A DNA stretch of 64,000 nucleotides, taken from Blastocladiella emersonii ATCC 22665 (Eukaryota > Fungi > Blastocladiomycota). Under the pieces are notes generated by a model, which did no database searches, had not been told where the DNA came from, and worked only from the letters and a program-made list of their open reading frames with translations. This document shows, piece by piece, positions 2,813 through 10,111 of the stretch. The DNA lies in contig JANHCV010000004.1 of assembly GCA_025594325.1 (NCBI GenBank), positions 1,922,001-1,986,000 on the forward strand, given 5' to 3'. Within the stretch, counting starts at the first letter, position 1, and every line of letters begins with the position of its first letter. Position numbers and translations under genes: made by a program.

Positions 2813-3425
2813 GCTGGCCTTGCTGCTCCTCTTCTTCATTACCCCACCCTCACCCTTCACTAGTGTACATTCTTACATCCCGCCCACGCCATAGCCTCTC
2901 CCTCCCCCTGCCTCGCGACGTGTGTCTTGCGTCCGATCCCCCTCCTCTCCCTCGCTGTATTTTTGTTTGCTCTCCTTGCCCGTCCGTATCTCATACCACC
3001 TTTGGCCCTGGTCCGGGGCCAAGCCGCTGCTCCCGATCGCGGACCCCCCACCTCCTCCGCGCGCCGGGCGCATGCGAGTCTCACCTATCCCAATACATGT
3101 GCCTTCCTTCACACACATCTCGCCCTGCTTCGCCAAGAACGAGTGCCGCGAGGCACCAAGGGATGCGGCCCGCGCGTCGCGCCGCGACTATGGTCGCCTC
3201 CTGATCCCGACTCCTGCTTGGCGCGCGGAGACCTGAATGTCTCGCGCGCTGCACCGCGCCGCGCCACGCATGCCTGCGTCGACATGCCGGCGACGCGTCG
3301 TGTTTCAAGTCGCCGCAGCCGCGAGAGAGGGGAGGTCATAGACGTAGACGCGCCGCGCCACGACGCATACCTCTGGATCACCGACTTCCATCATCTATCT
3401 GTATCCAATGCACTAGCGAGCGACC

Positions 3426-6400
3426 ATGAGCCCGCCACCACCACCCATCACCGACCCGCCAGCCACCGCGCCCGAGTCGCGTGCCTCGTCCAAACCGACC
3501 TCCGCCGCGTCGACCGTGGCCACGAGCGCGAGCGCCAACATCGCGAACAACAGCGGCGGAGGCGGATCGCGCCGCCCGTCGTGGAAGTCGCTCGGGTTCG
3601 GTAGCGGCCACGCCGGCCCGCCGCCTGGCGCTGAGCGGCTGCCCACGGCGCCGTCGTCCGAGGTCATGCCCGACGTGGCCGTCCCCGAACCGCCGGCGGC
3701 CAAGGGATCCAGCGGGTCGCCGCCCAAGAAGCCCGCGAGCCCGCTCGCCGCGCTCCGCGCCGAGGAACGTAGTCTCCTGTGGGCGACCAGCGGGAGCACG
3801 TCCGAGAGCCACGATCTGCTGCCGAAACAGGAGGATGCGACGCGAGGTACGTTCGCCCACACTCGGTTATCATCTTCGGACGACTAACAAGCTTGCACGC
3901 TCGCAGCCAAGGCTTCGGTGACCCCGCGCGCCGAGTCGCCAACCACCGAGCTCAACTCGCTCGGCTCGCCGCCGCCCGTGATCCAGTCGGCGGTCCTGAA
4001 CGTCGGCACCGCCATGTCGCAGCTCGCCGACAACCTCGCCAAGACCCCCGTCACGTCCGTGACCACGCGGCTGCCCGAGCCCGTGACGCCAACCAGCGTC
4101 GTGATCGCGTCGGCCTCGACAGCCCCCGTCGCCCCGCCGCTCCCGCAGGCCGCCGCCGGCAGCCCGGGCCACAGCGCGGCGGTCCCCGGCGTCACGCTCG
4201 ACTCGAGCGGCCGCAGCGAGCGCACCATGGAGTGGTTTCCGGGGAAACCCACGTTCCCGCCGCCGCAGCCCAGCCTCATCGCGAAACTGCCCGGCGGCGC
4301 CGCCGCCGTCCACCAGCACCACCAGCACCACAGCAACGCGACGGGGAAGCGCCAGGCGCCCGCGCCGCCGCCGCCCCCGCCGCTCCCGACCCTTCCGCCT
4401 GGATCTCCCGGCGGCGGCGGCGGGATGATGACGGCGGCCGACCGGCTCAAGTATATCAGCCCCGAGTCGTCGGTGGCCTCGTCGCACTTTCATGGCGGCG
4501 CAGGCGACGGCATGATGCCCATGGCGGTCGGTATCCCGGACCCGCTCGTCAACTCGCTCAACGCGTCGGGCCACCACGTCATGCGCGCGAGCGGGACCCC
4601 GCTCGAGGTCCAGGACCTCGACGGGAGCCGCCAGTCGACGGCAGGGTACAGCGTCGCGCCGCGGTCGCCCGTCGCCGTGACCGCGTCGTGGGGACCGAAC
4701 ATGAGTAACGGCGGGGGTAGCCCGAACGGCGGCGGAGCTGGAGGTCCGCGGACGCAGTCAGCCATGATCCTCGACGGCAACGGCGGCTCGTCGCCCGTCG
4801 TCCTGCTGCAGGCGCCCGCGAGCGGCGCCGGGTCGCGGTCGCCGAGCCCGACGGCCGACGCGGGGCTCAACGCCGAGCTCAAGTCCCTGACCCGCCAGAT
4901 GCGTGAGTTCGAGCGCAAGGTCAAGACCAACCAGCGCCGCACCTGTGTCGCGGTCGTCGTCGCCATCCTGTTCGCGCTCATCGCGCTGATCCTCGGGCTC
5001 CTCGTCCTCGCCAACAGCGGCAAGAGCTCGGGCACCGGCACGGGGACGGGGTCCGGTAGCGGGACGCAGTCTCTCGGCGCGTCGTCCGTCACCGAGGCGA
5101 TGCTGGCCGACGGCGCCGTGACGAACCCGAAACTCGCAACCTCGGCCGTCGACGCGCGCGCCCTGTCCGAACGCGCCGTCTCGGGCGAGAAGATTGCGCT
5201 GTCGGCGGTTGACGGCACGCACCTCGCGGCGGGCAGCGTCGGGCGCGCGGCCATTGCTGACGCGGCTGTGCACACCAACCATCTCGCGACGGGCGCGATC
5301 ACGTCGGCCCTGATCGCGAACCGCGCTGTCGGCAGCGACCAGATCGCGCTCGGCGCCGTCACCGCGCAGCACCTCGCGGCGGGCGTCGTCGGGACCACGC
5401 AGATCGCCGCGGGGAGTATCACCGAGGCCCACCTCGCATCGGGCGCCGCGTCGTCCCGCGTCATTGCCGACGCGGCCGTCGGCACACAGCAGATTTCGGA
5501 CCGCGCCGTGACGACCGCCAAGCTCGTGGATGGCGCGGTCGCGGGCGTCAAGCTCGCGGATGGAGCCGTCGCGACGGCCAAGATCGTCGACGCGGCCGTA
5601 TCGGCGGCCAAACTTGCAGATGGATCCGTCGGGACTTCGAAGCTCCTCGACGCGGCAGTCGCCCCCGAGAAGCTCGCGGACGGCGCCGTCACGCAGACCA
5701 AGCTCGCAGACTCCGTCGTGTCGACGGGCAAACTCGCCGACTCGGCGGTCGTCCCCGCCAAGCTCGCGGACCAGGCCGTCGTGACGGCGAAGCTCGCCGA
5801 CGGCAGTGTGACGCCGCCCAAGCTCGCGGACGCCGCGGTGACCACGCCCAAACTCGCTGACGGCGCCGTCACGTCCGCGAAACTCGCGCCGGGCGGCGTC
5901 AACACGGCGAACCTCGCCGACGCGGGCGTCACCAACTCGAAGATCGCCGCGGGCGCTGTCACCCAGGACAAGCTCGGGTTCAGCATCGCCAGTGTCGCGC
6001 TCGGGCCCGGCGCCGTCGGCACTTCGGCGCTCGCGGACGGCAGTGTCACGACGCCCAAGCTCGCGGCCGCCGCCGTCACCAACGAGAAGATCGCCGTCGG
6101 GACTATCTCGATCGACCGCCTCGGGTTCAGTATCGCCAGCGTCGCGCTCGGCGCGGGCGCTGTCGGGACCATGAATATCGTCGATGGCGCGGTCACGACG
6201 CCCAAGATCGCGGATAACGCCGTCACGTCGGCCAAGGTCGCGTCGGGCGCGGTCGGCACCGCGCAGCTCGCTGACGCCGCCGTGTCGACCGTCAAGCTTG
6301 CCGACAACGCGGTGACGGGTCCCAAGGTCGTCACGGGCGCGATCGGCACCGCGCACATCGCCGACGGGTCCGTCACGACGCCGAAGCTCGCCGACAACGC

Positions 6401-8542
6401 GGTCACGGCGGCCAAGGTCGCGGCGGCGGCCGTCGGGACCGTGCAGATCGCCGATAACGCGGTGACCACGGCCAAGCTCGCCGCCGCGTCGGTCGGCACC
6501 ACGCAGCTCGTCGACGGCAGCGTCGCGACCGTCAAGATCACGGACGGCGCCGTCACCACGCTCAAGCTCGCGGACACGAGTGTCGGCACGGCCAAGCTCG
6601 CTGACGCGGCCGTCACGACCATCAAGATTGCGGACGCGGGCGTCACGACGGCGAAACTCGTTGACGCGGGCGTGACTACGGCCAAGCTCGCGGACGGCAG
6701 TATCAGCACCATCAAGCTCATCGACTCGGCCGTCACCTCGACCAAGATCGCTGACGGCGGCGTCCTCACGGCCAAGCTGGCCGACACGTCGGTCACCACC
6801 ATCAAGCTCGCCGACCTCGCCGTCACGGCGGCTAAGCTCGACCTCGGCTCGGTCGGCACCCTCCAGCTGGCCGACGGCGGCGTCGCGACAGCCAAGCTCG
6901 CCGACACGTCGGTGACCTCGGCCAAGCTCGCGCTCGGTGGCGTCGGGACGCTGCAGCTTGCGGATACGGCGGTGACGACTGCGAAACTCGCCGACACGGC
7001 CGTCACGACCCTGAAACTTGCCGACACGTCGGTGACAACCGCGAAGCTCGCCGCGACCGCCGTCGGTACGGGCCAGCTCGCGGACGCCGCCGTGTCCACG
7101 GCAAAGCTGGCGGACGCGAGCGTAACGGCCATCAAGCTCGCCGCCGGCGCGATCGGGACCACGCAGCTCGCCGACGCGTCCGTGACGTCGGCCAAGCTCG
7201 CGACGGGCGCCGTGCTCACGGCCAACGTCGGCGCGCAGGCCATCACGACCGCGCTCCTCAAGCCGGGTGCTGTCGACGGCACGATCCTCGCGTCCACGAG
7301 CGTCGCCAACACGCACCTCGTCGACCAGGCCGTGACCTCGAGCAAGTTCGCGCCAGGCGCCGTCACGCTCGCGGCCATGGGGCAGGGCGCAGTCGACGGG
7401 ACCGTGCTGGCTAACGGCGCGGTCGCGACGACGCATCTCGTCGATGGCGCGGTGACGACGCCCAAGATCGCGGCCAACGCGGTCACAACGGCCAAGATGG
7501 CGCTCGGGTCGGTCGACGGCACGATCATCGCCGCGGCCTCGGTCGCCACGTCGCATCTGATTGATGGGTCGGTCGCGGCTGCCAAGCTCGCGACGAACGC
7601 GGTCACGTCCACGTCCATTGCCGCGAGCGCGGTCACGTCGGGCAAGATCGCGACGGGCGCGGTGACGAGGTGCGGCTTTGCTCATGTCGAGTCTGCGAGT
7701 GCGACGAACATTGACCTTGTTGATGCTGTGTAGCGACTCGATACTCGACGGTACCATTGCTACGGCCGACATTGCGGCCGGCGCCATCATCGGCACATCA
7801 ATTACCGATGGAGTCATCACGGAAGCGAAGCTTGCTGGTACGTTCAAATGATGAGCGGATTGGCGGCCACCACCTGACCACGGCCATGACCATGACCACG
7901 TAGATCTCTCCGTGTCCTCGAGCAAGATCCAGGCGCAGGCCATTTTCTCGGGCCACATCCTGTCCGGGTCGATCACGTCGACCAACATAGCAACCAGTGG
8001 TATCGCCGCCGGAAACATTGCCTGTGTGTATTCTGGCACCCGAAGATTGATTGGAGTGGATGGCCACTAACACAAATCGTCGTATAGCATCGGCCATCCT
8101 TGCGCGGCACCTTAGTGCGAGCGCCGTGACGTCTGCTGCGATCGCTTCTGGGGCTGTGACCTCGGCGGCAATTGCGAGTGCGGCTATCCAGAGTACCCAC
8201 ATCGGCACCAACCAGGTCCTCCCATCGAATTTCGCGATCCGGATCCTGCTTCTGTCCGTCTCCAGCCAAGGCCTGTCGACGACAACATACCTCGGCGGCC
8301 TGACCTCGACCAGGACAGCGACCGGCAACTACCGCATCACGGCGGACGCGGCCTCGGCCATTTCAAGCACCGTGATGTGCCTCGTCACCGCAGTCCGCAC
8401 CACGAGCCCTCGCTTCGGCTCCTGCGCGACCGAGACGTTGACTGGTGTCTACGCGCCTGGGTGCATGGTTTACTGCTCGGACAACACGGGCGCGGCGGCG
8501 GACATTGGCTTCAACGTCATGATGCTGGGTTCGGGAACCTGA
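3426..8542 (+). CDS. Giant type II membrane protein (~1620 aa): low-complexity N-terminus, coiled coil, one TM helix, ~100 (A/S)VTxxKLADG decapeptide repeats and a C-terminal globular domain
   Basis: Exons 3426-3846, 3907-7669, 7734-7837, 7904-8023 and 8088-8542, all joined in frame by GT..AG introns. The TM segment is VAVVVAILFALIALILGLLVLA. The repeats are directly visible in ORF 3918-7733 and continue in the downstream exons. Confidence 0.85.
5090..8210 (+). repeat. Coding tandem decapeptide repeat (consensus ~ADGAVTTAKL, 30-nt period)
   Basis: Continuous 10-aa periodicity in the translation; the nucleotide units are diverged, so the period is maintained at protein level. Confidence 0.9.
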
Positions 8543-8629
8543 TTCTTTGCTCGGACGCGTCGCTCATCTCGGCACGCGACGCAGTTATGTAATAGACTTT
8601 TGTGTATTCTCCACCACGCACGGCTGCGA

Positions 8630-10111
8630 TCACTTGAGGTACTCGTACTTTGCGAGTCGAAACAGGGTCTCGTCGTAGAGCTTGGCCGAGACCTCGCGGC
8701 CGCCAAAAAAGCGGCCGTGCATGGCGGCGACAGCGCGCTGGGCCGCGTCGGCGTGCGTGAACTGGACGAAGATGCGGACGGCGGCCTGGCCCGGCGGTGG
8801 GTTCTTGAACTAATAGTGCACGAGGGTCAGTGGTGGTCCGAGGCGGACGAAGGTCGCGGTCGAGGCCGTACCGTGTGGATGTGGCACTTGTGCACCTGAC
8901 CGAACTTGGAGCACTCCTCGGACGTCTCGGCCTCGAGGTCTTCGTCGACGTCGCGTGCGTCGACCATGTTCTCGAGGACTAGGACCGTCGACGCGGTGAT
9001 GGCGTCGAGCGGCTGCGGCGCGAGGTGCACGGTCGGTACCTTGACGGCGAGGTGCTGGTTGAGGATGGTCGGGTCGACGGTGCCGAGGACGTAAAGGCGG
9101 AGGAACCCGGGGATCTGCTTCAGGTCTACGGGTGGCGAGCGCAGTCAGCGACGTGCAAGGCGAGTCGTGCAAGGAGTGGGCGTACCGAGCTCGTCCATGG
9201 GTTCGCCGTCGATATCGATGCCCTCATCGTCGCTCTCCTCGGACTCGCTCGATGACGAGGACGAAGATGTCGCGCTGGACTCGACGCTCGAGGCGCGGGA
9301 TCCACGCGATGCGGGCGCAGTCGAGCGGCTCGGTGGATCCACGTTCATGGCATCCTCGAGTTCGGGGGCAGTCGAGACTCGAGACGATGGTGCGGGATCA
9401 GCGGGCCGAGCAACGGGTGCGGCGGGTGGTGGCGGCGGCGGGGGACGCGTCTTGCGCACCTCGTCGCGCCACTGGCGGTACGCCGTGTAGTCGTTGGGCC
9501 GCGTTGGATCGTACGGCTCGTCGTAGACTGTGCGAGGCCCGGTGCGCTTCTACACGTTGCGGAGGGTGAGAGACCGGTCGATGGGGACGCGGTCGGTGTG
9601 GTGCGCGGACCTTGCTGTTGTTGTTCGACCCACTAGGTGCACCGCGCTTAGAGCCTGCTTGCGCGGGAGCTGCGGTCCCATCAGGCGTGCTTGCAGCAGC
9701 AGGCAGGCTGTTAACCGACGACGACGACGATGCAGCCGACGCCGTCGTTGCCGGATCCTTGCTGTCGGAGATCGGCTGCGTCCACGCGGCTGTCCACGCG
9801 AGAGAAGCACAGCAAGAGGACCGAGACGAAGATCAGCTCGAGGGTCGGAGCGCGCAGAGGGGGCCCGAGGCCAAAGGAGAGGAAGAAGTGCCTGGAATCA
9901 CAGGACGCTTTGCCGCGGCCGAGGTCACCACCACCTTCTTGATGATCTGGCGCTTGCCCGGGATGGCCCTGACCACAGTCGTGGCCGTGGGTGCGGGCGT
10001 TGCGGCGGCTGCTTTGCCGGTCGACGCCGGCTTGGCCTCGGGCGGCGCCGGGTCCGCCGCGGCGGCGGGCGGGAGGCCGAGCCCGCCAAAGATGTCGTCG
10101 TAGGATGCCAT
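8630..10111 (-). CDS. RBM17: Splicing factor 45 (SPF45/RBM17)-like UHM/RRM protein, multi-exon
   Basis: N-terminus MASYDDIFGGL, YDPTRPNDY motif, and UHM domain VLVLENMV..DEDLEAETSEECSKFGQV..VRIFVQF..MHGRFFGGREVSAKLYD. Stop at 8630-8632. Internal exon boundaries are only partly resolved. Confidence 0.85.

Follow-up and report, generated by a model that had tools for sequence, protein, structure and literature searches.

A phage-type decapeptide fibre repeat within a predicted type-II membrane protein of the zoosporic fungus Blastocladiella emersonii

The gene and its predicted protein

The stretch of Blastocladiella emersonii ATCC 22665 DNA analysed here (contig JANHCV010000004.1, positions 1,922,001 to 1,986,000 of the forward strand; 64,000 nucleotides, hereafter the window) carries a five-exon gene whose predicted product combines a Pro/Ser-rich N-terminal region, a short coiled-coil-like segment and one transmembrane (TM) helix with a very long array of tandem decapeptides and a small C-terminal domain. 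The features of this gene are collected in Table 1. Judged by its sequence, the known part of the protein is a fibre module of prokaryotes and viruses, and the new part is the eukaryotic type-II membrane architecture around it.

In the list of open reading frames (ORFs) the gene appears as a 1271-aa ORF at 3918-7733 (+) with shorter same-strand ORFs on either side. All four introns that join these pieces are of the GT..AG type and 60-66 nt long, with a GTACGT donor in two of the four and a CTAAC branch site visible in introns 1 and 4. The period-10 register of the repeats is continuous across all three exon junctions that fall within the array, and, because wrong splice sites would not yield an unbroken register, this supports the splice model independently. 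Translation is predicted to start at 3426, the first ATG past the in-frame TAG at 3414, and 11 nt ahead of this codon lies a minimal upstream ORF, ATG CAC TAG (3407-3415).

The N-terminal 485 residues are composed of 15% proline, 13% serine, 13% alanine and 11% glycine, and end in juxtamembrane heptads with L461, L465, L468, M472, F475 and V479 at the a/d positions (spacing 4,3,4,3,4). The segment that follows (residues 486-509) has a Kyte-Doolittle value of 2.34, making it the sole segment of the protein at or above 2.2; it consists of L, V, A and I to 83% and holds no charges. It is flanked by KVKTNQRR before and NSGK after, with five K/R residues on the N-terminal side versus one on the C-terminal side (+5/+1), so that under the positive-inside rule the repeats would be placed outside the cell. 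The sequence thus combines the absence of an N-terminal signal peptide, one internal hydrophobic helix and a positive N-terminal flank, as in type-II single-pass proteins, and from the positive-inside rule we infer an N-in/C-out topology. At the far end of the protein, residues 1513-1620 form a non-repeat domain that holds all cysteines of the predicted ectodomain (at 1567, 1582, 1595 and 1599). The lack of N-x-S/T sequons in the ectodomain was considered as a sign of selection in the secretory pathway and rejected, since the fixed positions of the repeat largely explain it.

This anatomy agrees with a first-pass annotation of the same DNA, which had described a Pro/Ser-rich head, one TM helix, a Gly/Ser hinge, repeats and a terminal domain: every one of these elements is present in the spliced protein, and the four introns it had proposed leave the 4863-nt frame intact once removed. 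Two of its details needed adjustment. The coiled coil said to end in KVKTNQRR does have a/d heptads followed by that basic stretch, but is only about three heptads long, and the array, put at about 100 decapeptides over some 1000 residues, is present with a corrected count of ~98.

Table 1. The array gene, its exons and introns, and the segments of its predicted product (positions are those of the window)
Feature	Position	Strand	Residues	Remarks
Gene, five exons	3426-8542	+		spliced coding sequence 4863 nt, uninterrupted, 1620 aa
Exon 1	3426..3846	+	1-140	start codon and part of the Pro/Ser-rich cytoplasmic region; GC by codon position 0.65/0.71/0.86
Intron 1	3847..3906	+		60 nt, GTACGT...CAG, GACTAAC branch site; GC 0.55 vs ~0.72 in flanking exons
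Exon 2	3907..7669	+		remaining cytoplasmic region, coiled coil, TM helix, linker, bulk of repeat array
Poly-proline run PPPPPP	4365..4382	+	294-299	within APAPPPPPPLPTLPPGSP; possible SH3/profilin-type ligand
Juxtamembrane coiled-coil-like heptads	4866..4931	+	461-482	followed by basic KVKTNQRR
Single TM helix	4941..5012	+	486-509	predicted signal-anchor, N-terminus inside
Gly/Ser/Thr linker	5013..5084	+	510-533	G 33%, S 29%, T 17%; G/S/T 79%
Decapeptide array, exon-2 part	5085..7669	+	534-1394	strict period 10
First 12-residue interruption	5976..6011	+	831-842	GFSIASVALGPG
Second 12-residue interruption	6123..6158	+	880-891	GFSIASVALGAG; inside ~49-aa internal duplication
Intron 2	7670..7733	+		64 nt, GTGCGG...TAG, within repeat array; GC 0.53; register kept across junction
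Exon 3	7734..7837	+		degenerate repeats
Intron 3	7838..7903	+		66 nt, GTACGT...TAG
Exon 4	7904..8023	+		degenerate repeats
Intron 4	8024..8087	+		64 nt, GTGTGT...TAG, CTAAC branch site; GC 0.47
Exon 5, first part	8088..8215	+	up to 1512	final repeats
Exon 5, rest	8216..8542	+		108-aa non-repeat C-terminal domain, 4 Cys, plus stop codon

The decapeptide repeat and its relatives

The array keeps a strict 10-residue period from residue 534 to about residue 1512, with the consensus A-V-T-T-A-K-L-A-D-G. Among 95 in-register units, position 2 is V or I in 94 and position 7 is L, I, V or M in 94, which is well beyond chance; A8, K6 and D9 occur in 74%, 55% and 53% of the units, respectively. Positions 2 (V/I) and 7 (L/I) thereby put a hydrophobic residue at every fifth position, with small residues at i-2 (G/A at 10, A/T at 5). 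The units share a mean identity of 53% in DNA and 38% in protein, and the conserved positions 2 and 7 (99%) are written with several synonymous codons. Since the units have diverged in DNA while their conserved positions use synonymous codons, the array is old and kept at the protein level, as opposed to a recent DNA expansion, and the conservation of these two positions against the diverged DNA indicates that selection has acted on the protein.

Only two insertions of the form GFSIASVALGxG, at residues 831 and 880, interrupt the array. The pair lies ~49 residues apart in a duplicated block (window 5965-6165), and a similar stretch was found in one of 162 homologues (P0019, KVGFSIGGG). At window 7207-7669 (residues 1241-1394), about three copies of a 30-40-residue super-repeat, GAVDGT[I/V]LA..SVA.[T/S]HL[V/I]DG.V...K.A..AVT..., form a second periodicity that is absent from the central array. 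In the last three exons (window 7734-8542) the repeats are more degenerate, Ile-rich and poor in Lys, and three of the gene's four introns fall here.

We then compared the array with phage and bacterial proteins. A PHROG profile search returned 20 PHROGs, mostly annotated as tail fibre or minor tail proteins, with phrog_892 (E 2.4e-161, 14 stretches) and phrog_28766 (E 4.2e-146) in the lead; these E-values are inflated by repetition, but the alignments nonetheless span the whole array. Searching phage genomes with tblastn gave matches in 145 records, of which the top ones were tail fibre-like proteins of cyanopodoviruses, 42-49% identical over hundreds of residues, followed by proteins of actinophages, Lactobacillus phages and roseophages. 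A first search of a large protein collection yielded 43 matches and a second, with residues 1236-1394, at least 1673 (bacterial, phage or metagenomic). Those that are named or domain-annotated are bacterial or phage, with members in Flavihumibacter, Cupriavidus and Comamonas among the named NCBI entries; the sole exception is one protein from a data set of the alga Mesostigma viride. The domains borne by the homologues include DUF5907, Decapeptide, Peptidase_S74, Phage_T7_tail, Collar, fn3 and CBM_4_9, and the genes around the three top matches inspected (P0001, P0002 and P0044) are arranged as in a phage, or in a phage-like manner, and include portal, terminase, connector or Collar genes. In two phage contigs with the best match, P0001, a protein with an Mtd_N domain is encoded a few genes past the fibre gene (L001 13890-14162 and L002 7634-7906); Mtd_N is the N-terminal domain of target proteins of diversity-generating retroelements.

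To set the fungal units beside those of the 162 fetched matches, 7116 units were pooled with a loose pattern constrained at positions 1, 2, 7 and 8 alone. The positions left free by the pattern prefer T3, T/A4, A5, K6, D/A9 and G10, as they do in the fungal protein, and overall the query and the pooled units prefer the same residue or residue pair at 8 of the 10 positions. Because these shared preferences extend to positions that the pattern did not fix, the fungal array is best regarded as the same repeat and not as a mere likeness of composition. On these comparisons we conclude that the repeat of the predicted ectodomain is the phage/bacterial fibre decapeptide A-V-T-T-A-K-[L/I]-A-D-G, a unit that occurs in the shafts of many phage tail fibres, in a trimeric phage head-decoration protein and in long bacterial surface proteins. 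With 93 pattern-matching units, versus a maximum of 85 in the 162 matches, the fungal array is the longest among the proteins sampled.

The repeat is overwhelmingly bacterial and phage in its distribution, with scattered occurrences in eukaryotic viruses and algae. The Mesostigma protein (P0026; eukprot, Mv19951, 1653 aa) has ~18 such decapeptides near its N-terminus and then a long unrelated region. Invertebrate iridovirus proteins in BFVD (A0A5B8RHM6, A0A5B8RIB5 and A0A068QKX6) match the repeat model with E-values down to 8e-7, so that the repeat circulates in eukaryotic large DNA viruses too. No description of the decapeptide fibre repeat, of PF25296 or of DUF5907 was found in the literature searched.

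The closest likeness is to the shafts of phage tail fibres (PHROG 892, 28766, 21412 and 7660), as in the cyanopodoviruses S-TIP37, S-CBP4, NATL2A-133 and P-SSP3 and the minor tail proteins of actinophages. The fungal protein shares with them long tandem arrays of A-V-T-x-A-K-[I/L]-A-D-G and a layout in which a long shaft is followed by a small variable distal domain. Unlike these fibres, however, it possesses neither a virion-attachment N-terminal domain (T7 tail-fibre N, Collar) nor a Peptidase_S74 chaperone, and has instead a 485-aa cytoplasmic tail and a TM anchor encoded by an intron-containing eukaryotic gene; the Pfam scan of the fungal protein likewise found no Phage_T7_tail or other phage domain, no fn3 and no CBM module. 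Since there is no attachment domain and no phage context (introns, cellular neighbours), we do not regard the protein as a tail fibre. The array is also shared with bacterial surface proteins annotated as 'beta strand repeat-containing', WIAG-tail or DUF5907-Decapeptide (PF19264, PF25296), from which the fungal protein differs in that its anchor is a eukaryotic-type signal-anchor and not a signal peptide or outer-membrane anchor. No exon matched PF19264 (DUF5907) at E <= 1, though many of the homologues carry this domain, and the fungal protein stayed below the threshold of every Pfam and NCBIfam model tried.

Predicted structure of the array and the protein ends

An AlphaFold2 (AF2) monomer of residues 1001-1300 was computed from an alignment of slices of the window and homologue segments. 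The model has a mean predicted local distance difference test (pLDDT) score of 67, with 70-82 in most of the first 240 residues, and a predicted template modelling score (pTM) of 0.37. In each unit, positions 4-6 form a helical turn of three residues, and DSSP assigns no strands; the chain is periodic and non-compact. Against the PDB it had 0 Foldseek matches, and the best Z in a wide VIA-align search was 2.6; a reading of this model as a beta-helix was therefore rejected, as neither program matched it to a solved structure. Its matches among predicted models were cyanophage fibre proteins, two iridovirus proteins and bacterial WIAG-tail, DUF342, Peptidase_S74 and YadA-anchor proteins, with E-values of 1e-13 to 1e-14 for the last four groups in a Foldseek search of AlphaFold Database clusters. 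One interpretation is that a regular but non-compact monomer is what a strand that folds only in an oligomer would look like. Leads towards a trimer are the trimer-associated domains in homologues, the trimeric base of LME-1 orf16 and the juxtamembrane heptads. By simple arithmetic, the array would be ~23 nm long at 20 residues per 4.8 Å coil (solenoid) or ~47 nm at 10 residues per 4.8 Å layer (trimer).

The first-pass annotation had likened the repeat to those of bacterial and phage fibres, which the PHROG profiles, the tblastn matches and the pooled-unit consensus bear out, and its stalk of tens of nanometres is reasonable under either structural model. Its beta-helical fold, on the other hand, finds no counterpart in the AF2 monomer, with its periodic short turn per decapeptide, no compact fold and no PDB match. 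The rigid, possibly trimeric stalk and its role as an adhesin, spike or receptor on the zoospore are likewise putative, the role being deduced from architecture. It had also named no fungal counterpart, and none was present among the matches seen in these word-index searches, which are non-exhaustive and length-limited.

Relatives of the two ends of the protein were sought separately. A word-index search limited to 8000 scored candidates gave no homologue of the N-terminal 395 residues of exon 2 at E <= 0.001, and the C-terminal 116 residues had 0 matches at E <= 0.001 in an exhaustive HMMER scan of 1.84 billion representatives, with nothing relevant to the C-terminal domain in Pfam, NCBIfam or PHROG. 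Neither end resembles the 162 fetched homologues in a local phmmer comparison, in which the C-terminal domain gave nothing below E ~1. A WIAG-tail identity of the tip was considered and rejected: exon 5 had no match to this domain at E <= 1 (NCBIfam and Pfam), and the likeness to WIAG-tail proteins is confined to the repeat part. Modelled by AF2 from its single sequence, the C-terminal domain encoded by exon 5 reached a pLDDT of 36. Its language-model neighbours in Atlas are small phage fibre tip families of similar size (H_lectin, Gp53-like_C and K1-lyase_C), whose scores of 0.81-0.83 make them leads only. A strongly hydrophobic segment is present in 5 of the 162 homologues and falls within the first 40 residues in 4 of these 5, so that the long cytoplasmic tail and internal anchor are peculiar to the fungal protein.

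Origin, alternatives and possible function

The GC content at third codon positions (GC3) is 0.89-0.92 over most of the gene, compared with 0.85-0.93 in neighbouring ORFs, while GC2 is 0.56-0.61 and intron GC 0.47-0.58. Other ORFs in the window encode an ABC transporter and a class-3 lipase, and a convergent minus-strand gene at window 8625-9030 ends ~85 nt from the stop codon of the array gene; one of its two exons reads ...FVQFTHADAAQRAVAAMHGRFFGGREVSAKLYDETLFRLAKYEYLK*, and in sequence it resembles the UHM domain of splicing factors of the SPF45/PUF60 type, although the short fragments gave no significant match in Pfam. Host-like codon usage, introns that keep the register and cellular-looking neighbours argue for a resident eukaryotic gene and not contamination, and we conclude that the array gene is a resident nuclear gene of the fungus. 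Contigs from four DNA runs of one sample contain the locus as well, unspliced and identical in sequence, in one case within a 25-kb contig; this sample is perhaps the assembly's own source and thus not independent evidence. In one of these runs, loose contig ends at window 5666 and 5937 carry loxP-type adaptor-like sequence, which suggests a Cre-lox mate-pair library and therefore library artefacts, not genome variation. GC3 is lower in the last three exons (0.70 for residues 1395-1512 and 0.83 for the tip domain, vs ~0.9 elsewhere). The antisense ORFs at 4490-7645 and 4758-8039 (-; 1051 and 1093 aa) that overlap the gene are by-products of its GC-rich periodic repeat and not genes.

We consider it probable, on balance, that in this protein a fibre module gained by horizontal transfer has been joined to a type-II anchor of the host and is displayed as a surface rod that resembles a receptor or adhesin. 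The donor of the repeat module would have been a bacterium, a phage or a large DNA virus of eukaryotes, and such a horizontal origin is suggested by the overwhelmingly bacterial and phage distribution of the repeat. In its new lineage the module would then have been linked to a cytoplasmic tail and a signal anchor of host type, later gaining introns and host codon usage. The chains may assemble into a thin rod ~25-50 nm long, most likely a parallel homotrimer whose formation the juxtamembrane heptads and the TM helix would nucleate. Such a rod would hold the small, disulfide-capable C-terminal domain off the plasma membrane as a binding tip, and the proline-rich cytoplasmic tail could couple the rod to cytoskeletal or signalling proteins.

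The function may thus be akin to that of a membrane-anchored trimeric rod receptor or adhesin, by analogy with membrane collagens and class A scavenger receptors. Animal type-II trimeric rod receptors include membrane collagens XIII and XVII, the class A scavenger receptors and ectodysplasin. The analogy is functional only: the fungal protein shares with them an N-terminal cytoplasmic tail, a signal-anchor, a juxtamembrane coiled coil, a repetitive rod and a small C-terminal recognition domain, but has no sequence relation to them and no G-X-Y repeat, its coiled coil lies on the cytoplasmic side of the TM helix, and its trimer is putative. In a more specific proposal, which we put forward tentatively and think doubtful as it stands, a captured viral or phage shaft has been rebuilt as a cytoskeleton-coupled trimeric rod on the wall-less zoospore or germling, where the orphan tip would bind substrate, prey bacteria or viruses and act as an adhesin, a decoy or a sensor for fibre-bearing viruses.

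Several points weigh against the reading of a transferred module rebuilt as an anchored rod. The AF2 model is only moderately confident and non-compact, and demonstrates neither a beta-helix nor a trimer. The Pfam Decapeptide model PF25296 scores 26.5 bits on the fungal array against a gathering cut-off of 45; bacterial proteins listed with PF25296 reach 29-41 bits in the Pfam copy used, also below the cut-off, so this model is weak across the group as a whole. A repeat does not resolve the direction or the donor of the transfer, and alignments of tandem decapeptides carry little trustworthy tree signal, if any. No RNA run is listed for the gene or its 3' end that could serve as transcript evidence. 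The databases seem to lack the proteome of this genome and perhaps also the proteomes of its close relatives, which weakens the statement that there is no fungal orthologue. Finally, the zoospore location, the ligand and the cytoskeletal coupling are pure inference from architecture.

To these must be added the evidence for the strongest alternative, a monomeric right-handed quadrilateral beta-helix of the pentapeptide-repeat (Rfr) type, with two decapeptides per coil and a rod of ~23 nm that would not trimerise, which we regard as unlikely. The hydrophobic residues at every fifth position and the small i-2 residues described above are shared with pentapeptide-repeat proteins, including the repeat region of DotG/IcmE, and there are weak profile matches to DotG/IcmE repeats (E 8.6e-13, PDB sequences), HetL, Pentapeptide_4 and designed pentapeptide solenoids. 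The fungal unit, however, is strictly a decapeptide, and the Pfam thresholds are far from reached, with Pentapeptide_4 at 11.9 bits vs a cut-off of 38 and HetL at 27 bits vs 260. AF2 usually recovers Rfr folds; here the chain, a monomer modelled with moderate confidence, is non-compact and unlike the solved Rfr folds, and many solved pentapeptide proteins gave no Foldseek or VIA match. The homologues, moreover, bear domains typical of trimeric fibres.

Two further explanations concern the origin of the array, and we hold both to be improbable. Under the first, a eukaryotic virus, either a giant virus or a polinton-like element, has left one of its structural genes endogenised in the genome, where it may be inactive or serve the virus. 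The iridovirus proteins that contain the repeat speak for it, as does the infection of zoosporic fungi by giant viruses (PMC13533422; this Mycodnaviridae paper mentions neither Blastocladiella nor fibres). Yet no viral hallmark gene was seen adjoining the array gene, whose neighbours are cellular, the gene has four spliceosomal introns and a host-like GC3, and a 485-aa cytoplasmic tail with a signal anchor is not the architecture of a virion fibre. Under the second, which appears just as improbable, an Ala/Val/Thr-rich tandem repeat expanded internally in the fungus and converged on the fibre repeat without horizontal transfer. Short repeats do arise easily, the E-values of the repeat are inflated by multiplicity and composition, and both ends of the protein are without detectable relatives; against this stand the preferences shared with the 7116 pooled units, at positions not used for picking them as well, the identity of 42-49% to the best matches over hundreds of residues, and the age of the units, whose divergence in DNA argues against recent expansion.

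That the locus is non-functional, either a relic that is not expressed or an ORF wrongly modelled in a genome rich in GC, seems least probable of all: the absence of a listed RNA run and the ease with which long spurious ORFs arise on both strands at 67-72% GC, as in the two antisense ORFs of >1000 aa, would fit such a view, but the frame is intact only after four canonical introns are removed, the chosen frame has a GC3 of 0.9 vs a GC2 of 0.56-0.61, the periodicity of the protein has been kept while the DNA diverged, and the antisense ORFs are explained by the composition of the repeat.

Phages and bacteria carry the decapeptide fibre repeat very commonly (>1,600 proteins among the matches listed in a single search), yet it is without a robust curated domain model and without a matching solved structure in the PDB copy searched. 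A eukaryotic copy with 98 units behind a single TM anchor is therefore a convenient object for solving the structure of the repeat, and the gene lets one test whether a cell can turn a fibre of viral type into a surface organelle of its own. Should it prove unexpressed, it would be a mere curiosity. As it stands, it offers a candidate surface molecule for a zoosporic fungus in which little is known of the molecules used for adhesion and sensing. It would also exemplify the capture of a module across domains, well ameliorated and followed by a gain of introns. If a captured shaft has indeed been rebuilt as an anchored rod, the protein would represent a kind of cell-surface projection not previously described in eukaryotes, comparable to the membrane collagens but not built of collagen.

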